Positions 1 through 23,792 of a DNA stretch of 25,870 nt are shown here, piece after piece. Origin of the DNA: Octopus sinensis (taxonomy: Eukaryota); the NCBI RefSeq assembly GCF_006345805.1, contig NW_021836082.1:1-25870 (forward strand), read 5' to 3'. Numbering within the stretch: the stretch's first letter is position 1; each line of letters begins with the position of its first letter. Below the pieces are notes generated by a model, which was not told the DNA's origin, did no database searches, and was given only the letters and a program-made list of their open reading frames with translations. The translations under genes and the position numbers were made by a program.

Positions 1-310
1 AGTGGAAGTGTGTGCATTGCATGTTCTCTCTTTACCCCTCCCCCCTACACCTACGGTTTTCCCCCGTCTCTATGTGTCTGTTTGTCTGTCTGTCCTTCTG
101 TGAAAGACAGAGAGTAAGTGTGCTCTCTCTCTCTCTCTCTCTATCTCCTCTCTCTGACCCTATCCGTGTCTAATTGTTTCTTTGTCTTTCTGAGTTTTGT
201 GTTGTCTGTTTCCTTTATTTGTTATACACGCAGGCACATATACACTGTTGCTTTCTTTTTACATCTTTTTCCCCTCTTTCTCCTTCACTCCACTCATTCA
301 TTTATTTCTC

Positions 311-340
311 TATTTGTCTCTTTCACTTTCTCTCTCTCAG
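311..340 (+). promoter_or_regulatory. Candidate 3' splice acceptor 8 nt upstream of the ATG
   Basis: Long polypyrimidine tract ending ...tctctctcag|ccaccgacATG. Confidence 0.6.
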
Positions 341-348
341 CCACCGAC

Positions 349-967: not shown

Positions 968-973
968 GTAAGT
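968..973 (+). promoter_or_regulatory. 5' splice donor (GTAAGT) opening an intron that appears to run past the window end
   Basis: Perfect consensus g|gtaagt; the reading frame closes at 978 if unspliced. Confidence 0.85.
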
Positions 974-1085
974 TGTGATGTATTTTATTTATTTATTTCT
1001 ATTTCCAGGTGGAAAGTATCACGGTCTGAACCAAATTCTGACCGCAACTTATCTAAGTTACTATACGGTATATATTGCATCTTGT

Positions 1086-4330: not shown

Positions 4331-4800
4331 ATCATCATCATTGTCATTTAACATCCATCTTCCATGGGTTGGATGGTTTTGACTGAGGTCTGGAAAGCCA
4401 GCGGCTATACCAGGCTCCATTCTGAGCGGGCAATGTTTTTACAGCTGGATGCCCTTCCTAATGCCAACCACTCCGAGAGTGTAGTGGATGCTTTTTATGT
4501 GTCACCAGCACAGGAGCCAGTCAGGCGGCCTTGGCTTCGATCACCTTCAGATAGTGCTTTGTACATGCCACCAGCATGGGGGCCAGTTGACCACATTTGG
4601 ATTGTGCTTTTTATGTGCCACTGGCACTGGAGCGAGTCAGGTGGCCCAGGCATCAATCACATTCGGATTGTGCTTTTTACATGCATGGGAGCCAGTCAGG
4701 GGGCACTGGCTTCGGCCTCATTTAGATGGTGCTTTTTACGTGCCACCAGCATGGGAACCAGTCAAGCTGACTTGACAGTAACCAAGTTCAGATGGTGCTT
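4331..4800 (-). mobile_element. RTE 3'-UTR/tail fragment with decayed minisatellite
   Basis: (CAT)n, then acagctggatgcccttcctaatgccaaccactccgagagtgtagtgg as in the RTE 3' UTR at ~12830-12877. Confidence 0.85.
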
Positions 4801-5098
4801 TTTAGAAGCGTTAACATGTCAGGCAAATTGCTTAACAGTATTTCACCCATCTTCATGTTCTGAGTCCAAATACTGCTACAGTCAACTTTACATTTCATCC
4901 TTTCAGGGGTGTGTATATATATATATATAATATATAGATGAGAAAGTTGGTTTGTGAAAGCATGTGGTTGAATATATAGAAAATAGTAAAAAGTGAAAAA
5001 ACTACAGAAGGCTTGTTTTAAAAGGTTAAAAAATATATATTTGAGTCAATATGTCTGAAGAATGTTATCAATTTTTTTCTTACAATGACATAGTTTAG

Positions 5099-5138
5099 AA
5101 GAAATGACTGGTTTCGCGTTCAGCTTTTCAAATTTCTT
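5099..5138 (-). ncRNA. Minimal type I hammerhead motif, U3-A8 core variant
   Basis: Minus strand AAGAAAU UUGAAAA GC-UGAAC-GC GAAAC CA GUC| AUUUCUU: 7-bp stem I, 2-bp stem II. Confidence 0.6.
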
Positions 5139-5349
5139 ACATCGTTATGTTTACGTTGAGAAGAGTTCCAAATAAGGGGAGGTAATAAGTGATTTCTTCC
5201 GGTGTAAGGGAGATAATCGCTTAAAATTTTTTGTCTTTCCTTTGGAGTGAATTTCTCTGTATAAGTATGTTGGAATGGTTAAGTTTTATTTGGAACTCTT
5301 CTCAACATAAACATAACGATAACTCTTCTCAACGTAAACATAACGATGT

Positions 5350-5389
5350 AAGAAATTTGAAAAGCTGAACGCGAAACCGATCATTTCTT
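5350..5389 (+). ncRNA. Minimal type I hammerhead motif, U3-A8 core variant (stem III lesion)
   Basis: AAGAAAU UUGAAAA GC-UGAAC-GC GAAAC CG AUC| AUUUCUU. Confidence 0.55.
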
Positions 5390-5522
5390 CTAAACTATGT
5401 CATTGTAAGAAAAAATTGATAACATTCTTCAGACATATTGACTCAAATATATATTTTTTAACCTTTTAAAACAAGCCTTCTGTAGTTTTTTCACTTTTTA
5501 CTATTTTCTATATATATATATA

Positions 5523-5747
5523 TTTCTTTATTGCCCACAAGGGGCTAAACATAGAGGGGACAAACAAGGACAGACATAGGTATTAAGTCGATTATATCGA
5601 CCCCAGTGCGTAACTGGTACTTAAGTTATCGACCCCGAAAGGATGAAAGTCAAAGTCGACCTCGGCGGAATTTGAACTCGAAACGTATCGACAGACGAAA
5701 TACGGCTACGCATTTCGCCCGGCGTGCTAACGTTTCTGCCAGCTTGC

Positions 5748-5748
<1 letters not shown>
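5523..5748 (-). mobile_element. tRNA-derived SINE (1086 family), inverted
   Basis: Reverse complement of 1086-1318 over its full length. Confidence 0.9.
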
Positions 5749-5803
<55 letters not shown>

Positions 5804-5809
5804 TATATA

Positions 5810-5970
5810 GGCACTGGAGTGGCTGTGTGGTAAGTAGCTTGCTTACCAACCACATGGTTCAGCTTCAGTCCCACTGCATGGCACCTCGGGCAAGTGTCTT
5901 TTACTATAGCTTCAGGCCGATCAAAGCCTTGTGAGTGGATCTGGTTGACGGAAACTCAAAGAAGCCCGTA
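5810..5970 (+). mobile_element. tRNA-derived SINE with CORE-like segment (11962 family), 5' half
   Basis: ggcactggagtggctgtgtggtaagtagcttgcttaccaaccacatgg...gcacctcgggcaagtgtctt. Confidence 0.85.
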
Positions 5971-6020
<50 letters not shown>

Positions 6021-6204
6021 ATATGTTTGTGTGTCTGTGTTTATCTGTACTCCAAATTATATTTGTAAATGTTACATTTTATGTTAGAGCTGAAGAAGAT
6101 ACTGGCAAATGCCCTGGCACTTTGCCACCATCTCACTCCTGCTCTCTTCAATTTTCAAGGACACAATGTGCTGCCATGAGGGAATTCATTCAGTCCAGTG
6201 AAGG

Positions 6205-6450
6205 TGCATAGCTTAGTAATGGTAAGAGTGTTGCACTTGCAATTGGAAGATCATGATTTCAAATCCTGGACTGGATGGTGTACTGTGTTCTTGAGCAAAA
6301 CACTTCATTTCATGTTGCTCCAGGCCACTTTACCATAAATGAGTGACCCTGCAACAGATTAGTGTCCCCTTTAGAGGGAATGTTATTTTCTCAGTTACCC
6401 ATTTGTCATTGAAACTGGGTAACCAGCCCCAGGAGTCTTAAGGCTTGGGA
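6205..6450 (+). mobile_element. Decayed tRNA SINE with V/Meta-domain-like segment
   Basis: A-box-like tagcttagtaatgg, B-box-like gatttcaaatcc, and accctgcaacagattagtgtcccc...gaaactggg resembling 24065-24140. Confidence 0.55.
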
Positions 6451-7079
6451 AATACTTGCTTACAGTCCTCCTTATCCATTATTCTGTATTGGTTTTATTT
6501 TATAGACCCTGATATATTAAAATACAAATTTGACCCCTGCATGATTTGAACTCAGATTGCAGAATGTCAGAACAAATATTGAAAGTATTCTGTCCAGCTC
6601 TAGCTTACTTTACCTATCAGAGCACATTAGCCAAATATTGTGGTAAAACAAAATAGTTCAAACAGTGGAGTATGTTTTACGTTGTGGAGACAATCTGAAG
6701 CTTAACATTTTAAACACTTGCTCCTCATCAGAATGAATGTGAAAAAGCAATGGTCTTATTTAATAGGTTGTAAAATGATGGGAATAGCTCTGTGCATGAG
6801 TATACAATTGTGAGTATGAAGTATTTAATTATAGTGGGTATAGCTGTGTTTGTGCATGGGTATTAATCAAATATAATATGTAGGAAAAGCTCCGTGTTTG
6901 TGAGAGAGAGAGAGTGCAATGTGTGAGTATTCAGTCCAAGTTAATTCTTGTGTATTTTGTAAATGCATGATATTTATTTTTGTCTGAGAACAAATATATT
7001 AGTTCATACACACAGTAAATTATATATATATATATGTGGTGTGTGTGCATGTGTTTTATATATGTGTATTTATATATGC

Positions 7080-7111
<32 letters not shown>

Positions 7112-7254
7112 CTATATATATTATATATATTCATACATAAATATCTCCATAATTTATTTGTAAGCATGTTTGACTACATAGATACATCTATCTAAAATGT
7201 AATACATTGTGACTTTCAGATCAAATAGAAAGTAATTTTGTATGTCTGTGTGTA

Positions 7255-7285
<31 letters not shown>

Positions 7286-7861
7286 TTATGTGCTTGGGTA
7301 TGTGCATACTTAAAGAGTTAATGGTTGGACATGTAATGTGCATATATAAATATGTAATTGTGTGACTGTGCAAATGTTTGTGTGTTTAATATTTAATGAA
7401 TCTGCTGTGTATGCATTTGTAATATGTTAATGGACAATAGTTAAGTATGTTATAGCTTAAGAGCGTATGTTATCGTTTGTTTATTAACAATTTGTGTATT
7501 CCCATATATTTGTGTTTGTGTGTATATGTAAATATCTATGTATATTAACGTTTATGTATACATATGTAATTTATGTATACACACACTATATATATATATA
7601 TATATAATTATATAATATATATATATATATAATATATATATATATATATTTCAGCTAGATATGTTTCAGCCAAAGATTGTCCTGGGCCATGTCTAATTAA
7701 TAGCACCACTGATGCTATGTGTGTGTTTGTGTGTGTGTGTGTGTGTGTGCATGTAATTGTTAAAGAGGACAACAAACATTAAGGCAAGACAAACATCTCA
7801 AGTTATATTATTATTGGAAAAATTCTAAGTCTTACAGCTGTTTCTGGGATGTAACATATAT

Positions 7862-7965
7862 AGGCACAGGAGTGGCTGTGTGGTAAGTAGCCTGCTTACC
7901 AACCACATGGTTGCAGGTTCAGTCTCACTGCGTGACACCTTGGGCAAGTGTCTTCTACTATAGCC
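7862..7965 (+). mobile_element. SINE head (11962 family)
   Basis: ggcacaggagtggctgtgtggtaagtagcctgcttaccaaccacatgg...ccttgggcaagtgtcttctactatagcc. Confidence 0.85.
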
Positions 7966-8709
7966 TGGCATCAAGACACCTCTACCATATTTCTACCCAC
8001 CCTTCTCACTCACTTCAGAAGGTTTGTTTCTCTTCATCTTTGTGTATTATATGTCTGCCTCACTAGTGTCAGTGCTCCCCCCACTCCAACACACTATGCA
8101 CACTGTAACATTGGTTGGCATTAGGAAGGGCATCTCACCGTAGAAACCATGCTATCCATGCCACTCTTTTAATAATACTAACCATGATGATGATGACAGT
8201 GGTGATTGTGGCAGCAGTAATGATGATGATGATGATGATGATGAAGAGGAGGAGGAGTAGGAACTTGATGAAAAAAAATCCAGAGAAGATAGTTACTTTT
8301 GCAATCATCATTGATGAGTTTGCTTAGATTTGCCCACTTTGGCCATGTCACCCATTACAACCCCACAAATGGTATTCAGAAACCTGATGGGGGACAGTGC
8401 CCCATTAGTCATACAGAATTGGTCTAGTCAAAGAAGGAGTTTAGCTGGACAGTTGATTCTTGTATATCCATCTCGAAGTGTCCATTAGAGTTTATCGCTT
8501 ATGAATTGTTGCTTACCTCTTCAGTAATATCCTGCAAAAACGCACACCCCCTCCTCTCTCTCTCTAATAACATCAGCGCTTGCAAGAAGACTTCCATAGT
8601 CTTTGATCAGCTGCTCTTACCAGTAAATAATTAGAATTTCAAAAAGCACCATAATTCTTTGCTACAACCTGTTTGGTGACTAACCAAGCAGTGAACTTGT
8701 ACAATAGCA

Positions 8710-9000
8710 TCATCATCATCATCATCATACGTCCATTTTCTATGCTGGCATGGGTTGGACGGTTTGACAGGAGCTTGCAAGGCCAGAGAACTGCACCAGC
8801 CTCCAATTGTCTGTTTTGGCAAGGCTTTTACAGTTAGATACCCTTCCTAATGCCAGTCACTTTATGGAGTGTACTGGGTGCTTTATATGTGGTAACAGCA
8901 CAGGTGCTCTATATGTGGGGCCAGCACAGGTGCACTGTATGTGATGCCAGCATGGTTGCTTTATAAGCCAGCTGCTTATTACGTAACACCAGCACATGAA
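8710..9000 (-). mobile_element. RTE 3' tail fragment
   Basis: (CAT)n, gctggcatgggttggacggtt, cccttcctaatgcca, decayed minisatellite. Confidence 0.75.
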
Positions 9001-9137
9001 CAGTGTTTTGATTTCAACAAAGTAAAACTTCAACATATACAAACATGTAGTATATTTGGTGGCATATAAGGCATACCTTTTTCTATCCCTCCCAAAACAA
9101 TGTCTCAAAAAATGACTGTGGGTCCTATATGCAAATA

Positions 9138-9360
9138 TTGGGTTGTCCAGAAAGTTCATGCCGATTTATAGTAGCTTACCTTTTGACTTATTTTAGAACA
9201 TGGTTGAGTCCATGAAATAGGATTTGACTACACCTCCATTTAGAGCACAGTTTAAGCTATCTTTTCGTGGAAGAAGGTTTATGTTCCTATAACCTGTGTT
9301 AATTCTGTAACCCTTTAAAATGGGCTGCTGCAATTAGGGTGCAAATTTTATGCCATCTAA
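9138..9360. mobile_element. Possible mariner-like MITE remnant
   Basis: Left end TA-ttgggttgtccagaaagtt resembles mariner TIRs; the right-end match is only ~10/20. Confidence 0.3.
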
Positions 9361-9689
9361 TATGGCTTCTATGGTGTTTGTTTGTGTGTGTGTGTGTGTG
9401 TGTGTGGTGCAGATGTAGTAGATATAAGACAACATCGAAACCAATGGATAGGCAGCTGTATAAGAAATGTTTCTTCATCTCACTCCTTTGAATTCAAGTC
9501 CTGTTGGAATGTGTTTATCTTCTTGCTCTCTTATGAATGAATACCTGTAATTATAGGGTGAACTCTCCCATTGAAGATGACAAATGAGCGTTCAGCTTTT
9601 GCCGAACGACTTACACAAATGAATTGTTTATAATCATCATCATCATATGTTTATAGTGATCAATTGTTTGAGCCACGCATTAGCTCATT

Positions 9690-9870
9690 CTCTCCAAATC
9701 AATGTTGTTTGAACAGGTGCACTGTGAGCTATGCCTCAGGTGTCGAAGTGATTGCAGAGCAATGTGATGAAGTGTTTTCCTCAAGAACACAATGCACCAC
9801 CTAGTCCAGGAATTGAAACCACAATCTTGAGATTCCAACACACTAACCACTAGGCAATGCACCTTCATCT
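9690..9870 (-). mobile_element. Decayed tRNA SINE
   Basis: ctcaagaacacaatgcacc...ggaattgaaacc...ctaaccactaggcaatgcacct (reverse B and A boxes). Confidence 0.7.
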
Positions 9871-10076
9871 GTGATTTATATATATATATATATATTTGCG
9901 GGTTTGGCTCTGTGAAGTTATACACCTTTGTTATTTGTAGAGAGATTTGATGTGAACATCATTTGGTACAATGTGATGGTAAATGTGGTTCATTGATCTG
10001 TCTGGTTTGATAATAAGTGTGTGTATGTATATATGTATTATATATATATATTATATATATATATATATCTATATAT

Positions 10077-11095
10077 ACATTGTCTGTCTGGACTCCTATG
10101 CCATACTTAAGCTAGTAACCTGCCTCATCTTGATTCCGAATTCCTTTTGACAAGAATGTCCGTAAACGAAGTGATCCCAAGATAAGAAACCTTGCTTTAA
10201 TTCACCCGTTATTTCTATTTATTATTATTATTATTTATTAATTATTATTATCTTCTGATCCCCCTAGACGCCACTCTGTTTACTATTTAGCCTCGCCTCG
10301 TTTTTTTGCATATTCTGTATAATTCACTAGTTCATCGTTAGAGATATTTAAGATCTATTCTCCCTTACAGGGGATGATAGAAATTGGTGCCGATTCTTCG
10401 CGCCCTCTCCCCCCCTTCTTTTTACATTGTCTGTCTGGACTCCTATGCATACTCAAGCTAGTAACCTGCCTCATTCTTGATTCGATTCCTTTTGCCAAGA
10501 CTGTCCGTAAACGAAGTGATAAGCCCAATGATCCAAGACTAAAAAATCCTTGACTTTAATTCATCCCGTATTTCTTTTATTATTATTATTTATTAATTAT
10601 TATTCTGATCCCCCTAGACGCCACTCTGTTTACCTATTTCAGCCTCGCCTCGTTTTTGCATATCTGTTATAAATTCACTAGTTATCGTTATAGATATTTA
10701 GATCTATTTCTCCTTACAGGGCTGATAGAAATTGGCTGCCGATTCTTCGCGCCCTCTCCCCCTCTTTTTACATTGTCTGTCTGGACCTATGCATACTTAA
10801 GCTAGTAACCTGCCTCATTCTTGATCCGAATTCCTTTTGCCAAAACGTCGTAAACGAATGAGTCATCCCAAGATAAGAAATCCTGGATGTTGTTTCATCC
10901 CGTACCTATTTATATTTTCTATTATTTATTAATTATTTTATTCTGATCCCCCTAGACGCTCTGTTACTATTTCAGCCCCTGCCTCGTTTTTGCATATTCT
11001 GTATAATTCAATAGTTTATCGTTATAGAATTTAAGTCTATTCTCCCTCTACAGGGCTGATAGAAATTGGCTGCCGATTTTCGGCGCGACCGCCCT
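10077..11095. repeat. Tandem array of ~347-bp units, ~3 copies
   Basis: acattgtctgtctggac starts at 10077, 10424 and 10770; copies differ mostly by 1-nt indels. Confidence 0.92.
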
Positions 11096-11151
11096 ACCAC
11101 CCCACCACCAATACCGAATACTCTTTTGCTCCAACTAACGGATGTGTTGCT

Positions 11152-11410
11152 CCCACCACCATTATAGGTGTCTACTCTTTGAACCCCCCTCTTCAATACG
11201 CTATTATTTCACCATGCATTACCCCTCTCTCGATATCCTACGTTCTACTTGCCTAGAACCTGTCCTCTGAACCACCCCCCACCACCATTATAGGTGTCTA
11301 CTATTCGAAGCCCCCTCTTCAATACGCTATTTCATTCATTCACCATGCATTACCCCTCTCTCGGTATCCTACGTTCTACCTGCCTAGTACCCTGTCCCCC
11401 TCTGAACCAT
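11152..11410. repeat. Tandem duplication of a ~126-bp unit
   Basis: cccaccaccattataggtgtctact starts at 11152 and 11278. Confidence 0.9.
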
Positions 11411-11450
11411 CCCTCCCACTGGTGCTCCCCTATATTTCTGCACCCCCCCC

Positions 11451-11694
11451 CATAAAAAGCACCATCCGATCGTACGTGCCGATGCCAGACCCGCTTGGCA
11501 CCTGTGCAGGTGGCACGTAAAAAACACCCACTACACTCGCGAGTGGTTGGCGTTAGGAAGGGCATCCAGCTGTAGAAACACTGCCAGACTAGACTGGAGC
11601 CTGGGGCAGTCCCGAGCTCCCCAGACCCCGGTCGAAACCGTCCAACCCGTGCTAGCGCGGAAAACGGACGTTAAATGATGATGATGATGATGAT
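11451..11694 (+). mobile_element. RTE 3' tail
   Basis: gtggttggcgttaggaagggcatccagctgtagaaac...ccgtccaacccgtgctagc...ggacgttaaa(TGA)n. Confidence 0.88.
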
Positions 11695-11961
11695 GATATA
11701 CATAAACATAAACATATGTGTGTTTATATGTTGACAGGAAAATGTCCACAAGCCTCACCGTTTATAGCTCAGCAGGTTTTCTTTTCTTTTGGTTTGCTTT
11801 TTGGGGGACAATCTAGAACAGTGTTCCTCAACTGTTTTATCTTTGCATAAACCTTAAAATAAATTACATGTGTGAAGGAACACCTGCACCAAAAAATTAT
11901 ATATCAAAACTTTCTTATAATTTTTCATCATAGTTCACAGAGTAAATATCATATATATATA

Positions 11962-12122
11962 GGCGCAGGAGTGGCTGTGTGGTAAGTAGCTTGTTTACCA
12001 ACCACATGGTTCCTGGTTCAGACCCACTGCGTGGCACCTTGGGCAAGTGTCTTCTACTATAGCTTTGGGCCAACCAAAGCCTTGTGAGTGGATTTGGTAG
12101 ATGGAAACTGAAAGAAGCTTGT

Positions 12123-12156
<34 letters not shown>

Positions 12157-12297
12157 TATATTTGTGTGTCTGTGTTTGCCCCCACCCCATCACTTGATAA
12201 CTGATACTAGTGTGTTTATATCCCTGTTCGAATTGTTTGACTAAAGGCGGTGCTCCAGCATGGCCACAATCAAATGACTGAGACAAATAAAAGAATA
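11962..12297 (+). mobile_element. Full-length tRNA-derived SINE with CORE-like segment and internal (TA)n
   Basis: ggcgcaggagtggctgtgtggtaag head, ggttcagaccc B-box-like, gcaccttgggcaagtgtctt (resembles CORE gaccttgggcaagtcactt), tail aaataaaagaata. Confidence 0.85.
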
Positions 12298-12302
12298 TAT
12301 AT

Positions 12303-12606
12303 ATAGCCTCGGGCCAACCAAAGCCTTGTGGGTGGATTTGGTAGCCGGAAACTGAAAGAAGCCCGTCGTATATATGTATATATATATGTATGTGTGTGTA
12401 TATGTTTGTGTGTCTGTGTTTATCCCCCAACATCACTTGACAACCGATGCTGGTGTGTTTATGTCCCCCGTAACTTAACGGTTCGGCAAAAGAGAACGAC
12501 AGAATAAATACTAGGCTTACAAAGAATAAATCCTGGAGTTGATTTGCTCGACTAAAGGCTGTGCTCCAGCATGGCTGCGGTCAAATGACTTAAACAAGTA
12601 AAAGAG
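12303..12606 (+). mobile_element. Headless tandem copy of the 11962 SINE
   Basis: Repeats from atagcctcgggccaaccaaagcc to the gactaaagg...caaatgact tail. Confidence 0.8.
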
Positions 12607-12885
12607 TTAAGTGAGAGGGAGTGTGTGTGTGTATATATATATATTTATATATATATATATGTATATATATGTATATATGTGTATATATATGTATATATAT
12701 GTATCATCATCATCATCATCATCATCATCATTTAACGTCCGCTTTCCATGCTAGCATGGGTTGGACGGTTCAACTGGGGTCTGGCAAGCCCGAAGGCTGC
12801 ACCAGGCCAGTCAGATCTGGCAGTGTTTCTACAGCTGGATGCCCTTCCTAACGCCAACCACTCCGAGAGTGTAGTGGGTGATTTT

Positions 12886-13170
12886 ATGTGCCACTGACAC
12901 AGGTGCCAGACGAGGCTGGCAGACGGCCACGTTCGGATGGTGTTTTTTATGTGCCACCGACACAGGTGCCAGACGAGGCTGGCAGACGGCCACGCTCGGA
13001 TGGTGTTTTCTTATGTGCCACCGACACAGGTGCCAGACGAGGCTGGCGAACGGCCACGATCGGATGGTGTTTGTTATGTGCCCACAGCACGGAGGCCGGT
13101 CGATGCGGTACTGGCTACGGTCACGTTCGGATGGTTTTCTTATGTGCCACCGGCACTGGTACCACAAGGA
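12886..13170. repeat. ~63-bp VNTR in the RTE 3' UTR, ~4.5 copies
   Basis: atgtgcc at 12886, 12949, 13013, 13076 and 13142. Confidence 0.9.
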
Positions 13171-13332
13171 TACAAATTCCATTGATGTTCATCTATTTTG
13201 ATTTGGTTTGATTTGATTTGATTTGATTTGATTTTCACTTGCCTCAACAGGTCTTCACAAGTGTCACAAGAAGGAAGGTATGCACAGGTGGACTGACTAC
13301 GTCCCAGGTAGGGGCCACATGTTATGGCTTCA

Positions 13333-16146
13333 CTAGTCTTGCCGGGTCTTCTCACGCACAGCATACTTCCATAGGTCTCGGTCTCTAGTCTTTTCCATGG
13401 TGAGACCTAACGTTCGAAGGTCGTGCTTCACCACCTCGTCCCAGGTTTTCCTAGGTCTACCTCTTCCACGGGTTCCCTCAACTGCTAGGGATTGGCATTT
13501 TCTCACACACTTATCTTCATCCATTCTCGCCACATGACCATACCAGCGCAATCGTCTCTCTTGCGCACCACAACTGATGCTTCTTAGGTACAACATTTCT
13601 CTCAAGGAACTAACGCTCTGTCGAGTAAGTACACTGACATTACACATCCATCGGAGCATACTGGCTTCATTCCTCATGAGCTTACGCATGTCCTCAGCAG
13701 TCACGGCCCTGTTTCACTGCCATGTAGCATGGCAGTTCGTACACATGCATCATACAGTCTGCCTTTTACTCTGAGCGAGAGGCCTTTAGTCACCAGCAGA
13801 GGTAAGAGCTCCCTAAAATTTGCCCAGGCTATTCTTATTCTAGCAGTTACACTCTCAGCGCACCCACTCCCACTACTGACTTGGTCACCTAGATAACGGA
13901 AGCTATCAACTACTTCTAGTTTTTCCCCCTGGAAAGTGACGGAAGTTGTTTTCTGCAGATTTTTGGAGGTCAATGCTCCCGAGCATCTGCCACATACAAA
14001 AAACTATCTTCCCAGTTAGCCTACCTTTGACATTGCTGCACCTCTATGTCCATAGCTTACACTGGGTACATCTTATAGAGTTTCTACCCACACCTTTTCT
14101 ACAGATCGAGCAGGGCCATCTTCCTGAGGAAATTGTGGATTGTCTACCTTTCTACTTATTAGTACTTTGGTTTTAGCTAGGTTGACTCTAAGGCCCCTCG
14201 ATTCTAAACCCTCCTTCCACACCTGGAACTTCTCCTCCAGTTCTGATAGTGACTCAGCAATTAGAGCAAGGTCGTCAGCATAGAGGAGCTCCCAGGGGCA
14301 ACCTGTCTTGAATTCCTCCACAATTGCCTGGAGGACTATGGGAGGGGGCTGAGTACTGAACCCTGGTGGACCCCAACCTCTACTTTGAATTCTTCTGTGT
14401 ACATGTTGCCAACCCTAACCTTACTTACGGCATCTCTGTACATGGCTTGCACAGCCCTCACCAGCCATTCATCTATCCCTAGTTTCCTCATTGACCACCA
14501 GATGAAGGAAAGCCAGGTACAGGGGCTTATCTTTGGCTAGGTATTTCTCCTGCAGCTGCCTTACCAGGAATATAGCATCAGTGGTGCTTTTCCCTGGCAC
14601 GAACCCAAACTGCATCTCATCTAAACTAACTCTCTCTAATTAGTTGGGCTATGACCCTCTCCGTGACCTTCATTACCTGATCCAACAGCTTGATACCTCT
14701 GTAATTATTTGTATTTAGGGCATCACCTTTACCTTTGTAGCAGTTGACTAGTATGCTGCTACACCAGTCATTGGGTATGACTCCTTCGTGTATCACCTGG
14801 TTGACTATACGGGTGACTAGGTTTAGCCGACAGCCAGATATTTTGAGCATCTCTGCAGTAATCCTGATGGGCCTGGCTTTCCCTGTCTTATGTTCTAATT
14901 GCCTTAGCTACCACGGAACTATCAACTCGGATAGCTGGTCCCTCTGTTGGGTCAACATTCGGCAGACTCTCTTTATCCCATTCATTTTCTTTATTCAGCA
15001 ACCTTTCATAGTGGCATCTCCAAACCTCTCTCTTTGCATCCTCATTTAGCGCAAGTGAACCATCATCCATGCGAACACACTTCTCTCCTACCACATCACA
15101 ATTCTCTCTCACACACTGTCTTGCAACACGAAATACCTCAAGTCTTTCATCCACACAGCTCAGAACATTGGCAAATTTTTTCTTATCCGCTTCCCCTCTG
15201 GCTAAATAAACCTGTCTCCTAGCTTCCCTTCTGGCTGTCTGATACAATTCCCTGCTACCACCGTTCTTCCAGTCCTTCCAAGCCTGTCTCTTTTGTCTAA
15301 TAGCCCTGTCAACCACAGTGTTCCACCACTATGTTACTCTGGGTCGAGATGGTACTTTGCTCTATCCACAGATCTGGTCAGTGGCTGTCAGCAGATTGTC
15401 CCGTAGAAATCTCCAGTTGTCTTCCACATTAAGTGAAGCTATATCCCCTTCTATTTCGTCAAAGGCTTCGAGTAGTATGTCTCTAAATCTCTGTCCATTT
15501 GCAGGATCTTTAAGCTTCCAGACCCTTCTCCTCCAAGCTGGTCTTCTTCTGGGCAACCATTTAGCTCTGATCCTGAAGTCGCTTACTACTAATCTATGTT
15601 GAGGAGTACATTCTTCGCCTGGAAAGGTTTTGGCATTTATAATCAGCCCTCTTTCCCTTTTTCTGGCAAGGATGTAGTCAATCTGGCTGGTGTGTCTGCC
15701 AGAACGGTAGGTGACTAGGTGAGAGGTGGGTTTCCTGAAGTTGGTATTGCAGACCATAAGGTCATTTGCATCGCAGAACTCCAGCAGCCTGGTTCCCTCC
15801 TCATTACGAGAGCCAAAACCGTAGCCTCCATGGACGCCATGGAAGCCCCCGACATGCCGTCCAACATGTCCATTGAAATCACCTGCCACGAAGAGAAGGT
15901 CACTGTCATTTGTCAACGAGGTAGTCCGCAATAGGGTGTCATAAAATTGGTCTTTTTGTCCTTCCGGTAGCCCTGGTTGAGGGGCATATGCCGAGATGAT
16001 GGTAGCTGTCCTATGGTGAAGGACTAATCTAATTTTAATTACTCTGTCACATACTCTGACTACCTCGATTACCTTACCTACCCATTTCTCCGCAAGAAGT
16101 ATACCCACGCCCCCGACCCCGTCAGTGTTCCCTGCCCAGAAAATCT

Positions 16147-16147
<1 letters not shown>
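13333..16147 (-). pseudogene. Disrupted RTE EN-RT polyprotein
   Basis: Split across ORFs 15362..16306, 14888..15316, 14626..14850, 14073..14321, 13701..13973 and 13333..13704, with frameshifts and a deletion of RT motif A near 14505. Confidence 0.92.
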
Positions 16148-16200
<53 letters not shown>

Positions 16201-16235
16201 ACATATGTATGGGATTGAACCTGTGCCCAATGTCA

Positions 16236-16277
<42 letters not shown>

Positions 16278-16611
16278 ATATATATATATATATAATATAT
16301 ATACATGTATGTATGTATATAAACAGACAGACAGGTAAGTGGGGTGGGAGGAATGAGATAATGATGGGGGATAAGGGCAAGTTAGTGAAAGGTTGGATAG
16401 GAGAAACAGAGATCGTGAAAGAGTAAAGATGGTGAAGATGATGATGATGGTAATGGTGATGGTAGTGGTATTGATGATCATGGTAGTTGTGGTGGTAATG
16501 ATGATGATGATAATGATGACGCTCATCATCATTATCATTATTGCACCATATTTATCAATATGGTGTAATGAAAATTGTGGAGATGCAGAACAAACAAGAA
16601 TGGGTGGACTC

Positions 16612-16642
<31 letters not shown>

Positions 16643-16645
16643 GAG

Positions 16646-16680
<35 letters not shown>

Positions 16681-17093
16681 AGGAATTGTGTGTGTGTGTG
16701 TGAGACTGAAGTGTAAGTTGTCAGAAACTAATTGAAATGTTGCCTCAGGCTCCAGACATACCACTTGCTCTTACAACCAGAAATATATTCCTTTAGATAT
16801 ATATTTTCTTCTTGAGGAACCCCATCGAATGGCGGAATTGGTAGATTTAACAGACAATTATGATTTGCTATGATTGAGTTTGTGGTCTGATTCCATGCCA
16901 ATTCCAAATCTTGTCACATTTGATAAAATAAGTACCAAATGTCAAATTAGCAGAGCCATCAGAACCATATGGGATGTGAGCATGACATTCTTGGGGAGAA
17001 ACTTGCTTTCCAACCATATGGCCTTGGATTCAGTCCCACCAGCCAACTAAAACCTTTGTACGGATTTGGTAAGCAGAAACTAAAAGAAGCCTG

Positions 17094-17134
<41 letters not shown>

Positions 17135-17545
17135 ATAGTATAGTGATCTCGCTCGCTTTGTGGCCATTTTCTCCCCTGTCAGTATATGAAAATGTGCTTT
17201 CTTGCAGCTCCAAAGTTTTTTAACTCTTATTTCTAGCAATGTAGACACTACGTGACACCCTCAGTCACAATTACTGACAATTGAATTTTTCCTTTTTTGT
17301 TTTATATTGTGTATAGCTGTCTTTGTTATTTTATACACACACACACACATATATATATCTTTTACTGTGGCACCACCTTGGAGAATTTTAGTCAAATGAA
17401 TTGACCAGTACTTTTTTTTTGTTAAGCCTGGTACTTATACTGTCAATCTCTTTGCCAAACTGCTAAGTTACAGGACATAAACTCACTAACACCTGTTGCC
17501 AAGCATTGTGATGGGGAACAAATACAGACACACCATCTTTAGGAG

Positions 17546-17582
<37 letters not shown>

Positions 17583-17589
17583 ATATATA

Positions 17590-17752
17590 TATATGATGGG
17601 CTTCATGCAGTTTCTATCTACTAAATTCACTCACAAGGCTTTTGATCAGCCCAAGGTTATAATAGAAGACATTTGCCCAGAGTGCCACACAGTTGGACTG
17701 AACCTGGAACCATGTAGTTGGGAAGCAAGCTTCTTACCATACAGCCATGCCT
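17590..17752 (-). mobile_element. Decayed SINE (11962 family)
   Basis: gggcttc...aaattcactcacaaggctttg...tgggactgaacc-like...ttaccatacagccatgcctg. Confidence 0.75.
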
Positions 17753-18504
17753 GTGTTCTTTTTTATACCAACGCCACACCTAGAACCAGCCCTGAGTCGG
17801 ATCTAAAGTTTAAACTGGATTTGGCACTTACTAACATGATACTTTACTGATTCTTCTACCTCACTGTAAACTCTATGTTATTGTACCTAGCCATTTCTGA
17901 TGCCCTACTTGTTGATATGCCTACATTCTAAAAGGTAATGAGTAAAGACCTCCTTCAGTCATGAACGACCATGGGGTTGCACCTAGAAAGTTCCCTTCCG
18001 AGGCACAAGTCTGGGCAAGGTTGTTTGTGAAAAACTCGCAGTCACCCATGCATACCAGCCTCCCCACTCCATGCCACCAATGTTATCCAAGGCAAAGGCT
18101 TGGCACCAGCGATGTTGCAACTCATTTCTACAGCTGAGTGAACTGGAGCAATGTGAAATAAAGTGTCTTGCTCAAGAACACAACACATTGCCCAATCTGA
18201 GAATCGAACTCATTATCTCATGGTTGTGAATCCTATGCCGTAACCCAGTGTTTTCCAAACCTTTCATTTATATTTTATAAATATATAACTTGTAAGCAAA
18301 GTAAAATACATTTTCACGAGAAATGTGAGTTATCATTTATCGATAATAATCTGTAAATATTTGCAAGGATTAATAAAAAAAGAAATTATTATAACTTACT
18401 GTTTCAGTGAGATACATGACCTTGATGGGAAGAACAGAGATTTTGGATATTCGGTGGAATAGTAGACAATGGCATGCATTTCATTATCAAGCATTTTCAC
18501 TTTT

Positions 18505-19020
18505 CTATATTTTGATGTATAAGTTTTGCGTTGCTGAAAAAGATGCTTCACAAATGTATGTAGTAGAAAATTGCAAAAGAATTTGTAAAGCTTTTTTAGC
18601 TAGGTTTGAATGCTTCTTTGAGACATGAATCCAAAAGTTCTGTAAGTTCCCCTCTTCATAAATCAATAACAGACACCGATCATTCTTGATTTCAGCTAGT
18701 TCTTCGGTAAGTGAAAAATCAATCGTTGCAGTTGCAAGAAATAGATTTCTGATCCAATCATAGTTTTGGATTTCAATATTTGGAAAATAATAATCAAGTT
18801 TTTCTCTAAGCAATGTTAAATGGTCAACAATTAACAAGTTTTGGAAAACATTTCAAAATTTCCTTCTTTTATTTTGCATTTCCAAATTGTTATCTCGTCT
18901 CTCAAAGCATAGATTTTATCAGCCGATGTTAAGATATTTTCTGCTTTTCCTTGCATACCTATGTTCATTAGAACAAATTTTGTTAATTAGAAATGCCATC
19001 TTCTGCAACTTTTCTTTTCA
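18505..19020 (-). pseudogene. hAT transposase C-terminal remnant (dimerisation domain)
   Basis: FWIHVSKKHSNLAKKALQILLQFSTTYICEASFSA; upstream MQGKAENILTSADKIYALRDEITIWKCKIKEGNFEMF. Confidence 0.9.
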
Positions 19021-19507
19021 TAATTAAAAACTTATCCATTTTATTGGTAATTTAATTACAATTTATGAATAAAACTAAGTTGATTTATTATAAAGTTATG
19101 ATAACTAAACATGTAATTAATTTCACCGGCACTAAGCATGATAAAATTAGAGATGGCAAGTTGCACTTAATTAGAACACCCAGTTCCTAAGGCTAAGCTT
19201 GCGAGACTGATGAACAAGGGACAAGAGTGTCATGAGTTAAAATGTGATTTCATAATTATTAATTCACCCCCAGTAATGCATAATACCAGTATAGGTGAGC
19301 AATAACTTTAGGCAATTTGAAAGCAGTTCTAGTGTGCGGATTTGCACAGGTGAGGATTTGCAAATTTTTAATTGATTTTCAGTTTACTTCAGATAAGAGA
19401 AGAGTGTTTGCAATATATTAATTCTTTTCAGTTCTATATTTAAGAGATGAGGAATTAGGTACATTATTTACATTTGACAGGTATTTGTCCTCATCTTGTT
19501 TGTTGTT

Positions 19508-19553
19508 AACACAACGTTTCAGCTGATATATCCTCCAGGCTTCATCAGCTGTC
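19508..19553 (-). ncRNA. Minimal type I hammerhead motif, canonical C3-G8 core (stem I and II lesions)
   Basis: GACAG CUGAUGA A GCCUG-GAGGAUAUAU-CAGCU GAAAC GUU| GUGUU. Confidence 0.65.
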
Positions 19554-19806
19554 TTGGGAAAATTGCGAACCTGGGTTCTCATTCCTAAGGTACTTTTTGG
19601 TGTTCTTGTTATTATTATTAATTTATTCACCACGCATATGGCGTAGTGGTTAATTTATTCACTACGCATATGGCATAGTGGTTAAGAGTGCAGGCTACTA
19701 ACCCCAAAATTCCGAGTTCGATTCCCAGTAGTGACCTGAATAAATTAATAATAACAACACCGAAAAATACCTTAGGAATGAGAACCCAGGTTCGTAATTT
19801 CCCCAA

Positions 19807-19852
19807 GACACCTGATGAAGGCTGGAGGGTATATCAGCTGAAACATTGTGTT
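19807..19852 (+). ncRNA. Minimal type I hammerhead motif, canonical C3-G8 core (stem III lesion)
   Basis: GACAC CUGAUGA A GGCUG-GAGGGUAUAU-CAGCU GAAAC AUU| GUGUU. Confidence 0.7.
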
Positions 19853-20891
19853 AACAACAAACAAGATGACAAATATCCATCAAATGTAAATAATTCTTTT
19901 ACATTGAATAAACTACAATGAAAACGAGCATTATTTAATGAAGATTACTTGTGCCTTTCTTCTTTTTTTTTTTTAATCTTGCCTCCAAACATTAAATGGG
20001 AAACAATAGCTAACAGGTACATTCATTGATAGGTTTGCTAACAAACAGATTCTGAAAAGCTGAAACAAATTGGTATTGTGTATTTTATATACTGGTTTCC
20101 TGTAGGTTTGTGACACACTCACACCCTACTGGCGGCACACAGTTTGGAAAACACTGCTCTAACCACTGAGCCATGCACCTAGATTCTAATGAAACTTATA
20201 ACTAATCAGTATATCATCATCATCATCATCATTTAACATCTGTTTTCCATGCTGGCATGGGTTAGACAGCTTGACCAGAAACTGGTAAGGCCAGCGCCTG
20301 TTTCTTCAAGGCGGTGCCCCAGCATGGCCGCAGTCTCATATACCCGCATAAGCAAGCATGTCAGACAGCTGTTGCAGTGTGTGGAGCGAAGCAGTGGGAG
20401 AATAACGAGTTAAATGTTCATTGTTGAACGTTCTGGTGGGTTTCCCAAATATTCTTTGTTGATGTGTGTGTGTATGTGTGTGTGTGTGTGTGTGTGTGCG
20501 CGTGTGTGTGTGTGAGTGTGTGTGTGTGTTGGGGTTATTGATATCTGTTGGGTCCCCTACTTAGCTGTTTTCCACAGATCCATATCACCACCATAACTAT
20601 TATTAGTAATGGAATATCTCAACTGGATATGGCCGGTTTAAGTGCTAACGGGGTTAATCCAAGGCTGTCAAGCACACATGATGCTCAGGTCACATCCAGC
20701 CTGCAAGTTGCACCCAATCTGCATTTTTGCAACAAGCCTGTTGCAATGCACTGTTAGATTAGAGACCCCCCCCCAAAAAAAAATATTGTGAATGGCAAGG
20801 AAATTCATATCTTTTTTAATTCTATTCCTCTAGCTTTTATTTGCTTTTTTTCATTTTTTCCCTGTTAACCCTTTCTCTCTCATCTGGCTTC

Positions 20892-20928
<37 letters not shown>

Positions 20929-21309
20929 CTCTCTCCTCTCTCTCGTTTTACTTTCTTTTCTTCTCCCTTCCCCTCTTTGTCATCCTTCTCTTTTTTCCAA
21001 TCCTCCCCCCACACATACACTTCTCTTCTCTCTCTCCCTTTGCTCTCATTCAGCCAGTCCCACTCCTGACTATCCCCATGTCCTTGTAGACAATCCCTGC
21101 AAAATGTCAAATGTTAAATCTCTAATTTCACATTGGTGATATGGAAGGGGTTGCAGGGGCTGTGGGGAGGGGTGAGAGAGAGAGAGAGAGAGAGAGCATG
21201 TCTGTTTGAACTAACAACATCATGTCTTACATCAAAAGCCAACCACCAACACTGCCACAAAAGTTGGCACTGCTACCACCACCACCACCACTACTACTAC
21301 TACTACTTT

Positions 21310-21410
21310 ATCCGAAATGTTTGGGACCGGAAGTGTTTTGGATTCTGAACTGTTTTTTTTTTCTTTTCCTTTTCAGATTTCAGTAAATTTTTTAGGAATT
21401 CGGAAATATT
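21310..21410 (+). mobile_element. Possible pogo/Tigger-like MITE end fragment
   Basis: ttatccgaaatgtttgggaccggaagtgttttggatt recalls Tigger4/MER46-type termini; no matching right end seen. Confidence 0.35.
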
Positions 21411-21736
21411 GTATGTTTTCATTGTGTTCATGCTGGAGCATTGCCATAAAAGGGTTGAGTTGAGCAAAATCAACCCAGGTTCTCTTTTGTTTTATTTTTA
21501 AGTCTGGTACTTATTTTATCAGTTCTTTGGTAGAACTGCTAAGTTATGGGGATGTAAACAAACTAGGGGTGTTAAATATGGACACACATACATACACATA
21601 TATCATAATTTCTCACATACACACACTCATATATATATATATATTTATATATAAACAATTGCAGCGTGGAAGGTGTTTATAAGCCATTTAAGAAACACAC
21701 AAAAGCCGTTCGATTCACTTCAACATTTAAGTTTAA

Positions 21737-21787
21737 TTTGTCAAAATATTTTCGTCGCTTTAAGACCGCGACCTGTTCACTGACAAA
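21737..21787 (-). ncRNA. Minimal type I hammerhead motif, G3-C8 core variant
   Basis: UUUGUCA GUGAACA G GUCGC-GGUCUUAAA-GCGAC GAAAA UA UUU| UGACAAA. Confidence 0.65.
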
Positions 21788-21795
21788 AATCCGTT

Positions 21796-21845
21796 TTTGT
21801 CAGTGAACAGGTCGCGGATTTTAGCGACGAAAATATTTTGACAAA
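21796..21845 (+). ncRNA. Minimal type I hammerhead motif, G3-C8 core variant
   Basis: UUUGUCA GUGAACA G GUCGC-GGAUUUUA-GCGAC GAAAA UA UUU| UGACAAA. Confidence 0.65.
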
Positions 21846-21983
21846 TTAAACTTAAATGTTGAAGTGAATCGAACGGCTTTTGTGTGTTTCTTAAATGGCT
21901 TATAAACACCTTCCACGCTGCAATTGTTTTCGTTTCAGCACACAATCTCAGATCAAATTACTTGCTATGTGAGTACATCTCCA

Positions 21984-22018
<35 letters not shown>

Positions 22019-22347: not shown

Positions 22348-22714
22348 TGGTGAGAGATAAATATTACTTAATAGACACAATACATGTATTTATGTGTTAC
22401 TAAGAGTTTCATACTTTGAGAAATACCTCAAATGTATTCATCAGGCACAAACTACATATCATAATGAAATATAAATTGAATGAGAGAAGAAACACGAAAA
22501 GTTGAGAAGGAAACATAGAAAACATGACAGGTTAAAAAAAACAGAAAATGTATAAGTAAAAATCAAAGAAGGTAGAAGAGTTATGCTCCTTAGACATTAA
22601 ATTATAAGGCTGGAAAGATATCGACAAGTTAATCAGGTATAGACGGAATTTTCCAATTCTTCAAAATAAACTTAGACATATGTTTACAGCTGTTAAATTG
22701 AAATGGATGCTGGT

Positions 22715-22895: not shown

Positions 22896-23792
22896 ATATA
22901 TATATATATATATATATATATAACAAAATAATAAATAAAACATATGCATATATACATACATATATGTACATACCTACATCTATATGTATATATACATGCA
23001 TATATGGGTACAGGACACCAAATAGACGTTGAACACAACGAGAAATGAAAACATCAAAACAAACCATGGAAACGGACTTTTTTCAAACAACGAAAAAACG
23101 GAGTACAAGACATACAACACAAGGAATATTCCCCTTCTTCAGCTGCCCCTGCTTCGTCTCCCCCGTGTTTTGAAGGTAAGGGCAAGACACGACTTTGTTG
23201 AAACAGTCCTTCCCGTAAAGCAAATTAAATAAAATTTGGAATTTTTTGCGGAGGGGTAAAAGTGGTAACAAGAACAGGACAGTAAAAACAAACCAAGACA
23301 GTAAAAGCAATACAAATAAAAACAGTAAAAGACAGGACAAGGAGAATAACACAGTAAAAACAAACGGTAAGGGCTGTTAAGCCGGAACAAAAGGAAAAAT
23401 TATTTTGAACACTTTGAGAGAATGGCTTAAGAGAGGGACAGGAAAGCCGTCTGCACATGAGTGGCTGTGTCGTAAGTAGCTTGCTTACCAACTATATGGT
23501 TCCAGGTTCAGTCCCACTGTGTTGTCAACAAAAACTGTACCAGCCGAACACTGGGGTGGGGGTGGGGGTCAATGTTATTGACTTACCCCATCTCTTGAAC
23601 TTGCAGCCCTTGTACCAATATTTGATGCTAATATTCTCTGTAAGCAAGTCTGGTTGGTCATGGGGAAATGGAGAAATGTTACCTTACTTGGAAACAAGTG
23701 AGGGTTGGTGACAGGAAGGGCATCCAGCTGTAAAAAAATCTCCCCCTATAAATTCCATCTGACCCATGCAAAGATGGACAAGTGGACATTAA

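Follow-up and report, generated by a model that had tools for sequence, protein, structure and literature searches.

Outward-facing minimal hammerhead-like motifs in three foldback insertions of an Octopus sinensis contig: a likely case of Penelope-type insertion products

The stretch of DNA analyzed here (hereafter the window) consists of 25,870 nt of contig NW_021836082.1 of Octopus sinensis. It is AT-rich and contains many TA and TG microsatellites, tRNA-derived short interspersed elements (SINEs) and one degenerate long interspersed element (LINE). Its three longest inverted repeats, called elements A, B and C, have no sequence in common with one another or with the rest of the window, and the two arms of each carry type I hammerhead-like motifs that point outward. 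These motifs are not accidental; this conclusion is strong in the case of C and B but weaker in that of A. On balance, we favor an origin by three independent insertions of short non-coding units that bore the minimal type I hammerhead of Penelope-like elements (PLEs), each formed as a head-to-head product of the PLE type, and we hold this explanation with moderate rather than high confidence. Mobilization by PLEs, a dimeric mechanism of the ribozyme and past cleavage are the parts of it that we infer.

Hammerhead-like motifs of the three foldbacks

The original prediction described three mutually unrelated foldbacks with a single architecture, and direct reading of the sequence confirmed both their inverted arms and their outward hammerhead-like motifs. 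The type I layout (stem I, core, stem II, GAAA and a very short stem III) can be read in the arms and occurs far above the chance level. The cores had been correctly given as UUGAAAA (A), CUGAUGA (B) and GUGAACA (C), with U4 G5 A6 and A9 invariant over all six arms; G12 A13 A14, A15.1-U16.1 and H17 are likewise all present, in register between stems I and II. Stem I has 5-7 bp, stem II has 5-6 bp in B and C and 2 bp in A, and helix III consists of a single A-U pair, which means that this helix can form only between two copies.

A relaxed descriptor (stem I of at least 5 bp, core N-UGA-N-N-A with a Watson-Crick 3-8 pair, spacer of 0-1 nt, stem II of at least 2 bp in which a bulge is allowed, GAAA, 2-4 nt, U, H and stem I′) was run on both strands of the window. 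Its matches are confined to the three foldbacks, where they cover five of the six arms; the left arm of B fails at the minimum length of stem I. Far fewer matches are expected by chance: a mean of 0.03 per window after dinucleotide shuffling (n = 300), a mean of 0.074 per window for decoys with permuted core letters run on the real window (n = 95), and 0.07 by calculation (36,392 structural frames multiplied by a sequence probability of 1.9e-6). The decoy rate is 0.011 per window at the stringency that A meets and 0.021 at the one that B and C meet. It is because five arms in three elements match, against 0.03-0.07 matches expected, that we do not regard the motifs as accidental. When non-Watson-Crick combinations were put at 3-8, the descriptor had no match in the window, although chance favors such combinations by about 3:1. 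This is in line with the earlier statement that the 3-8 pair is Watson-Crick in all three elements, and no unpaired 3-8 was found at the main stringency of the descriptor; a match with an AA core and an unpaired 3-8 (23045-23084, plus strand) turns up only in a very relaxed scan.

The consensus hammerhead of Poseidon_Ac (supplement of PMC11167929), which cleaves in vitro and needed protein for this, was used as a positive control and satisfies the descriptor with a spacer of 1, a 6-bp stem II that includes G-U pairs, and GAAACGU. A PLE locus of Tenebrio, tried for the same purpose, contains no CUGANGA...GAAA anywhere. The comparison DNA comprised 113 kb from O. bimaculoides, O. sinensis and O. 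vulgaris, fetched via LINE proteins, and the relaxed descriptor had no match in it. A descriptor reduced to the core, a hairpin and GAAA, without stems I and III, was rejected as too unspecific, its decoys giving about one match per window and about six per 113 kb. Rfam scans (type I hammerhead RF00163, gathering threshold of 34 bits) were made in gathering and E-value modes over the whole window and over each element. The only Hammerhead_1 match in the window (5267-5308, minus strand; 16.8 bits vs 34; E = 0.48 in a 571-nt search) lies in the asymmetric center of A, has no CUGANGA core and is regarded as a chance match. Other sub-threshold Rfam matches, to plant microRNA (miRNA) families derived from miniature inverted-repeat transposable elements (MITEs), were obtained at 19567-19793 and 21677-21905 (MIR2606, 62 bits vs 139.7; MIR1435; MIR2655) and reflect long hairpins only.

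In PLEs, minimal type I hammerheads sit in the pseudo-long terminal repeats (pseudo-LTRs) and have a helix III of 1-2 bp with a palindromic loop of 2-4 nt, two copies making the active dimer; an unpaired base between A9 and position 10.1 and a conserved G10.1-C11.1 pair are further traits (PMC4209133). The unpaired base after A9 is present in C (G21810) and B (A19819) and absent from A, G10.1-C11.1 is present in A and C, and a palindromic helix III is found in C (AAUAUU) and in the left arm of B (ACGU), not in the right arm of B (ACAU) nor in A (ACCGAU/ACCAGU). None of these features was imposed by the descriptor, and C has all three. The proposal that the motifs are of the minimal type I kind tied to PLEs is therefore supported by hallmarks that lie outside the descriptor. 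It had also been stated that a search limited to CUGANGA would overlook A and C, and it would indeed, their cores being UUGAAAA and GUGAACA. Hammerhead counts in invertebrates are probably underestimates, since CUGANGA descriptors and Rfam models miss motifs of this sort.

Element C

Element C and its surroundings have the following features.

21641-21652, plus strand: target-site duplication ATATTTATATAT, 12 bp, left copy adjoining C
21653-21929, no strand: foldback C, a near-perfect palindrome centered at 21791/21792, whose arms are identical outside the stem II loop and 2 central nucleotides
21737-21787, minus strand: left-arm mirror motif, core 21780-21774, loop 2 GGUCUUAAA, predicted cleavage after 21744
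21796-21845, plus strand: right-arm motif with stem I UUUGUCA/UGACAAA (7 bp), core GUGAACA at 21803-21809 (G3-C8), unpaired G21810, stem II GUCGC/GCGAC at 21811-21828 (G10.1-C11.1), GAAA at 21829-21832, AUAU, U21837 and U21838, predicted cleavage after 21838
21930-21982, plus strand: one-sided extension of 53 nt at the right end, inside the target-site duplication, a candidate PLE tail
21983-21994, plus strand: target-site duplication ATATTTATATAT, 12 bp, right copy directly 3′ of the 53-nt tail

The arms (21653-21759 and 21823-21929) are 100% complementary. In the right-arm motif, the stem II loop is GGAUUUUA, and the helix III sequence AAUAUU is self-complementary. The minimum free energy (MFE) structures contain stems I and II and nothing else, the core staying open (-15.4 and -14.5 kcal/mol), with z = -2.8 for the right arm and -2.4 for the left one. 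Over about 130 nt the arms are alike save for four differences bunched in the 8-9 nt of the stem II loop (21816-21823 vs 21759-21767). This clustering is unlike random mutation after insertion and could reflect two template RNAs, a mutational hotspot in the loop or a homogenization that skipped the hairpin.

The 12-mer ATATTTATATAT occurs three times in total in the window, and the direct repeat that it forms around C encloses the whole 330-bp unit. A (TA)n tract is found on both sides: it adjoins the left end, and 53 nt of unique sequence intervenes on the right. Because a 12-bp duplication encloses an asymmetric insert, target-primed reverse transcription, and not cut-and-paste transposition, is indicated for C. 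The target duplications of terminal inverted repeat (TIR) transposons are usually of another length range, and a 12-bp duplication with an asymmetric 53-nt extension is atypical of them. If this extension is a PLE tail, the right copy would have started further 3′ on the RNA template. The predicted cut site lies 91 nt from the arm end, the counterpart of this distance being 85-92 nt in Poseidon_Ac (PMC11167929).

Each locus could also have received a single copy of a hammerhead-bearing SINE or retrozyme that a later event at the DNA level, such as the repair of a hairpin-capped break or template switching, made palindromic. The junction of C, with its unpaired 4-nt center (TCCG), does look like a snap-back, and (TA)n tracts are fragile sites. 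But this history would need three such events within 17 kb, solely at hammerhead-bearing elements, and no comparable SINE palindromes were noticed in the window despite the abundance of SINEs. Moreover, the target duplication of C brackets the entire palindrome together with its tail, which argues for a single insertion event, and we regard a secondary palindrome as very unlikely.

Element B

Element B is an older inverted pair, with a tRNA-like sequence at its center. Its features are as follows.

19463-19894, no strand: foldback B, an inverted pair, older, whose right copy is longer and includes the tRNA-like head (from the arm alignment)
19508-19553, minus strand: left-arm motif, core 19548-19542; the palindromic ACGU of helix III is kept, the closing pair of stem I (G.G) and one pair of stem II (C.C) are lost
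19639-19725, plus strand: tRNA-like internal promoter of RNA polymerase III (pol III) at the center of B, directed at the right-arm hammerhead
19639-19649, plus strand: A box TGGCGTAGTGG, within a 32-nt duplication
19671-19681, plus strand: A box TGGCATAGTGG
19716-19725, plus strand: B box GTTCGATTCC, whose core GTTCGANNCC is found once in the window
19807-19852, plus strand: right-arm motif with stem I GACAC/GUGUU, core CUGAUGA at 19812-19818, unpaired A19819, stem II GGCUGG/UCAGCU at 19820-19839 (6 bp, two of them G-U), GAAA at 19840-19843, CA, U19846 and U19847, predicted cleavage after 19847
19897-19900, plus strand: run of TTTT located 3 nt beyond the end of the right arm, possibly a terminator for pol III, such a run being weak evidence in AT-rich DNA

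The left end of B had been placed at 19429, which is about 34 nt too far out, the arm alignment giving 19463. The arms are 92% complementary at 19491-19614 and 19746-19869, extend to 19463 and 19894 and thus diverge by about 8%. The stem II loop of the right-arm motif is AGGGUAUA. Within the motif the arms differ at four positions: the right arm keeps the pairs of stems I and II, and the left arm keeps ACGU where the right one has ACAU, a CpG-to-CpA change. Since each arm keeps what the other has lost, an intact ancestral minimal hammerhead followed by neutral decay is indicated. The drift rate is the same inside and outside the motif (about 8%), and there is therefore no sign of selection on the inserted copies. 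In local folding, stems I and II form in the right arm with part of the core also paired (z = -0.9), and a competing hairpin is preferred in the left arm. The layout of the right arm is that of the Poseidon_Ac hammerhead, which cleaves experimentally: both have the spacer and a 6-bp stem II, and the GAAACGU of Poseidon_Ac finds its ACGU in the left arm of B.

The second A box is separated by 45 nt from the B box, on the same strand as the right-arm hammerhead and upstream of it. Neither ARAGORN nor the Rfam tRNA model calls a tRNA in the center of B, apart from an ARAGORN call that needs a very low stringency and an intron model that is implausible. Since the A and B boxes are present without such a call, this center is best read as a degenerate tRNA derivative. 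Judged from its sequence, the unit of B is SINE-like, with a tRNA-type head made of A and B boxes, then the hammerhead, then the 3′ end, as in the schistosome Sm-alpha.

Element A

The features of element A are the following.

4938-4971, no strand: one-sided spacer of 34 nt that separates the left end of A from the (TA)n upstream of it (from the reading of the flanks), a candidate PLE tail
4972-5515, no strand: foldback A, made of a minus-strand left copy and a plus-strand right copy whose 3′ ends face outward, the center (about 5177-5284) being asymmetric
5099-5138, minus strand: left-arm mirror motif, core 5131-5125, with ACCAGU as the helix III segment against ACCGAU on the right
5294-5347, plus strand: tandem duplication of 27 nt, in the right copy of A only
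5350-5389, plus strand: right-arm motif with stem I 5350-5356/5383-5389 (7 bp), core UUGAAAA at 5357-5363 (U3-A8), stem II GC/GC at 5364-5372 (2 bp), GAAA at 5373-5376, CCGA, U5381 and C5382, predicted cleavage after 5382

The arms are 100% complementary at 4972-5077 and 5410-5515 and continue as 5073-5167 and 5321-5415 at 98%; the sole differences in their alignment are an AG/GA swap, an indel of 1 nt in a run of A and the 27-nt duplication. The right arm reads AAGAAAU, UUGAAAA, GC-UGAAC-GC, GAAA, CCGA, U, C and AUUUCUU, and among the hallmarks of minimal PLE hammerheads it has only G10.1-C11.1. By local folding, the motif does not exceed shuffled sequence in stability (z = +0.1 to +0.2; +0.13 for the right arm). 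The only substitutions between the arms, the adjacent AG/GA (5108-5109 vs 5379-5380), fall within the helix III segment. From this it is possible that A had an ancestral, palindromic ACCGGU that underwent one G-to-A change in each arm. As with C, (TA)n is found on both sides of A: it adjoins the right end, and 34 nt of unique sequence separates it from the left end. Within these (TA)n tracts, a target duplication of A would be ambiguous to read.

All three elements could also be ordinary foldback or MITE DNA transposons, or local palindromes, whose likeness to hammerheads is a coincidence in AT-rich, hairpin-rich DNA. They do have long TIRs, TA dinucleotides are readable at both ends of A, the motif of A is marginal when taken alone, the descriptor was tuned post hoc, and Rfam gives only sub-threshold hairpin families of MITE-derived miRNAs and no hammerhead at the sites. 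A coincidence would, however, have to account for three independent matches where 0.03-0.07 are expected under an equally tuned structure, and for additional PLE-specific features that the descriptor did not demand. It would also leave aside the 12-bp duplication and asymmetric 53-nt extension of C, which fall outside the usual range of TIR transposons, and the SINE-type pol III head of B. We consider this explanation very unlikely.

The 3-8 base pair

The 3-8 pair is U-A in A, C-G in B and G-C in C. The natural covariation put forward by the original prediction is true as a description of these three sequences and agrees with known biology, but its U3-A8 state was already published and only the G-C one is new. 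Natural covariation from C3-G8 to U3-A8 was reported by Perreault et al. 2011 (PMC3088659), and U3-A8 is found in PLE hammerheads, with about 1,300 matches in Schistosoma (Cervera & de la Pena 2014, PMC4209133). G3-C8 has been described as an engineered double mutant in which cleavage is partially restored, a PLE hammerhead included (PMC11167929). No report of natural G3-C8 hammerheads, nor of hammerheads in Octopus, was found in open-access text, and only the G3-C8 state of C seems to be new and undescribed from nature. A covariation test in the statistical sense cannot be made out of three sequences that come from as many unrelated families.

A bolder proposal is that C is a naturally evolved G3-C8 hammerhead. 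Together with U3-A8 and C3-G8, three Watson-Crick versions would then coexist in the PLE-dependent elements of one Octopus genome, and B would be a tRNA-headed SINE that extends the Sm-alpha design from flatworms to cephalopods. Taken as a whole, this is tentative and, in our view, rather doubtful. If true, the G3-C8 core would offer a natural way to learn if guanine itself is required at position 8, or if the ribose and the pairing partner suffice.

Origin and activity of the foldbacks

Insertions of PLEs are strongly 5′-truncated, often with an inverted 5′-truncated copy adjoining the 5′ end (Craig et al. 2021, PMC8557442). Some clades have a strong bias for (TA)n, target duplications are often unreadable, and a tail of 30-40 bp is found at one end (PMC8557442). 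The Poseidon_Ac enzyme cuts and extends both DNA strands, and reverse transcription begins at two internal sites whose spacing explains the tail (PMC11167929). In Schistosoma, paired minimal hammerheads occur 100-700 bp apart on opposite strands (PMC4209133).

In the origin that we favor, a PLE reverse transcriptase with its GIY-YIG endonuclease would have cut a (TA)n microsatellite, and both DNA ends would have been extended on the 3′ part of the RNA of the element. The joining of two 5′-truncated cDNA copies head-to-head would then have given a foldback with both 3′ ends and both ribozymes outward, and the 34-53 nt by which one arm is longer would be the published tail between two start sites of reverse transcription. 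In the source elements, the hammerhead would have its role in the life cycle, with two sense copies pairing via a palindromic helix III so that the dimer cleaves; C-G, U-A and G-C would be the forms in which the three source families have retained the 3-8 pair. Once part of an inserted foldback, the ribozymes would be passengers. The geometry of all three elements, as read from the arm alignments, consists of inverted copies with their 3′ ends outward, the inner ends being asymmetric in A and B. Tracts of (TA)n are 2-3 times more frequent in the window than in other Octopus loci, and this richness fits the presence of three insertions here and of none in 113 kb elsewhere. The near-identity of the arms suggests that the insertions of A and C are young.

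In a read-through RNA of the whole foldback, a structure constrained to stems I and II is less stable than the long hairpin by 58-60 kcal/mol. In the RNA of a single arm, these stems are within the MFE structure or equal to it in energy for all three elements, which argues that the hammerhead fold is native to the unit, as one would expect of a fold that functions in the source elements. According to this modeling, the inserted copies are probably inactive: they are unlikely to cleave because helix III calls for two copies where each strand offers a single sense ribozyme, and because the long hairpin is the more stable fold by about 60 kcal/mol. For the inserted copies, the selection for cleavage that had been put forward is not supported: they are unlikely to cleave, and the drift of the arms of B gives no sign of selection on them.

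The foldback had also been viewed as a class of element in its own right, yet its structure (inverted 5′-truncated copy and, in A and C, a candidate one-sided tail and a (TA)n target) matches the known product of PLE insertion, and the foldback is probably not the heritable design. Were it instead a heritable design that defines a new class of ribozyme-bearing, non-autonomous retroelements, selection would act on the paired outward hammerheads, for instance through a divergent central transcription that gives two identical, dimerizing RNAs. In keeping with this, C is a complete palindrome whose two copies share their inner end nucleotide, arm identity reaches about 99-100% in A and C, all three elements that pass the descriptor (stem I of at least 5 bp) are foldbacks, and the center of B holds a promoter-like tRNA head that faces outward. 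However, the RNA of such an element would be a perfect hairpin of about 100-200 bp, with an advantage of about 60 kcal/mol over the ribozyme fold, and would make a poor template for reverse transcription. The centers of A and B are asymmetric, as unequal 5′ truncation predicts, one-sided tails break the symmetry, the promoter of B serves one arm only, and the geometry is already known as a by-product of PLE insertion (PMC8557442). We consider a heritable foldback unlikely.

Several observations speak against the PLE-type origin. A search for further copies of A, B and C in the window, the 113 kb of Octopus DNA and viral and metagenome contigs found none, and tblastn with 120 PLE proteins of one clade revealed no PLE coding sequence in the window or in these 113 kb. 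Even with matches up to E = 10 admitted, in searches of 300-570 nt, the Rfam hammerhead models recognize none of the six sites, and the ranges of the descriptor were chosen after the candidates were known, the decoys using identical ranges. Element A is weak, with a stem II of 2 bp, no spacer, a non-palindromic helix III and a z of about 0, and it could alternatively be a TA-flanked MITE. The flanks of B have no microsatellite, no tail and no target duplication. In C, the tail of 53 nt exceeds the published 30-40 bp, and both copies share one inner end nucleotide, which snap-back synthesis or a heritable palindrome would fit too.

Exact-pattern matches to A, B and C in the viral and metagenome contigs are of 17-23 nt only and are attributed to chance. 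The region of Poseidon_Ac that comprises the reverse transcriptase and endonuclease (RT-EN), used as a query, gave 4523 matches, and no Octopus protein is among the best 120 of these 4523. Queries with open reading frames (ORFs) internal to B and C, and with an ORF of the LINE, found nothing on record.

If the PLE-type origin is true, Octopus has, or recently had, a PLE machinery that moves tiny hammerhead-bearing passengers into (TA)n tracts. Furthermore, foldbacks of 100-200 bp in a transcribed region would give long double-stranded RNA, which may be relevant to RNA editing and small-RNA pathways of cephalopods.

Neighboring features and other hammerhead-like motifs

A fourth hammerhead-like motif is found at 22398-22444 on the minus strand. 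It has a CUGAUGA core, a helix II of 10-11 bp (AUACAUUUGAG...CUCAAAGUAU) and GAAA-CUCU-U-A, its stem I has about 3 bp, and it lies outside the inverted repeats, with the head of a tRNA-derived SINE about 50 nt downstream on the same strand. A locus of O. sinensis CM016861.1 in the comparison DNA (L017) contains, at 5495-5551 on the plus strand, a good hammerhead-like motif that reads GGGAU, CUGAUGA, U, a helix II of 11 bp, GAAA, CCUAACG, U, A and AUCCC. At 2519-2545, the same locus has CUGAUGA with AGGAG/CUCCU and GAAA, followed by the palindrome AUAUGCAUAU. As read from these sequences, this suggests that Octopus genomes have PLE-type hammerheads here and there, the overall counts in those loci being not above the decoy level.

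An exon-like ORF at 118-978 (plus strand) begins in the manner of a signal peptide (MATLLLLSS...), and its C-terminal part resembles proteins that have a PA domain (PF02225). As a protein query it gave only two matches, at about 54% identity, and no annotated Octopus orthologue. The three foldbacks may lie in the first intron of the gene to which this ORF belongs; as transcribed sequences they would form long double-stranded RNA that editing or small-RNA pathways could possibly use as a substrate.

The degenerate LINE (13333-16306, minus strand) is flanked by (TA)n and includes an Exo_endo_phos endonuclease ORF, called "craniofacial development protein 2-like" in Octopus annotations, and fragments similar to reverse transcriptase over several frames; the endonuclease ORF is 83% identical to a protein of Octopus bimaculoides. 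Copies of tRNA-derived SINEs are located at 5521-5748, 5791-5860, 7844-7913, 11943-12012 and 23433-23502. One SINE copy begins 6 nt past the right end of A and is 96% identical to an O. sinensis copy. Short arrays of 59-66 nt repeats (GTGCCACC.ACA.GGTGCCAG...) at 4508-4828 and 12884-13106 are part of a dispersed repeat, of which the copy at 12718-13202 has 97% identity to an O. sinensis locus.

Comparison with known systems

The foldback and MITE DNA transposons share long inverted arms, small size and an AT-rich target with the elements described here. They differ in that C has a 12-bp duplication and an asymmetric tail, B has a pol III head, and the hammerhead motifs are non-random.

Metazoan non-LTR retrozymes (PMC7229834; preprint 10.64898/2026.07.22.740005) are likewise small and non-coding, carry a type I hammerhead and have been suggested to depend on PLEs. 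Theirs are direct tandem repeats that yield circular RNAs, whereas A, B and C are inverted pairs in which we found no tandem hammerhead units, only internal duplications of 27 and 32 nt.

The SINE-like retroposons Sm-alpha and Sj-alpha of schistosomes (cited in PMC2770079) resemble B: their units, a few hundred nucleotides long, begin with a pol III head of tRNA origin, after which comes a type I hammerhead. B differs from them by the lack of sequence similarity, by its minimal, dimer-type hammerhead and by a locus that is an inverted pair.

The minimal hammerheads of PLEs (PMC4209133) correspond to the present motifs in their type I topology, a helix III made of A15.1-U16.1 plus, in C and in the left arm of B, a palindrome of 2-4 nt, the spacer after A9 in B and C, G10.1-C11.1 in A and C, U3-A8 in A, and pairs on opposite strands. 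The elements of the window depart from them in that no PLE ORF or pseudo-LTR context could be identified for them, by the G3-C8 of C, and by the 2-bp stem II and non-palindromic helix III of A.

As for the architecture of PLE insertions (PMC8557442, PMC11167929), the foldbacks share the inverted 5′-truncated copy, target duplications that often cannot be read, and, in A and C, a (TA)n setting with a candidate one-sided tail, the tail being optional in PLEs; C also agrees with a hammerhead located about 90 nt upstream of the start of reverse transcription. They differ by copies that are very short (140-350 nt) and non-coding, by the 53-nt tail of C, and by the absence of microsatellite and tail from B. 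Overall, A, B and C are best filed within a known kind, that of PLE-type inverted insertions of hammerhead-bearing non-autonomous units.

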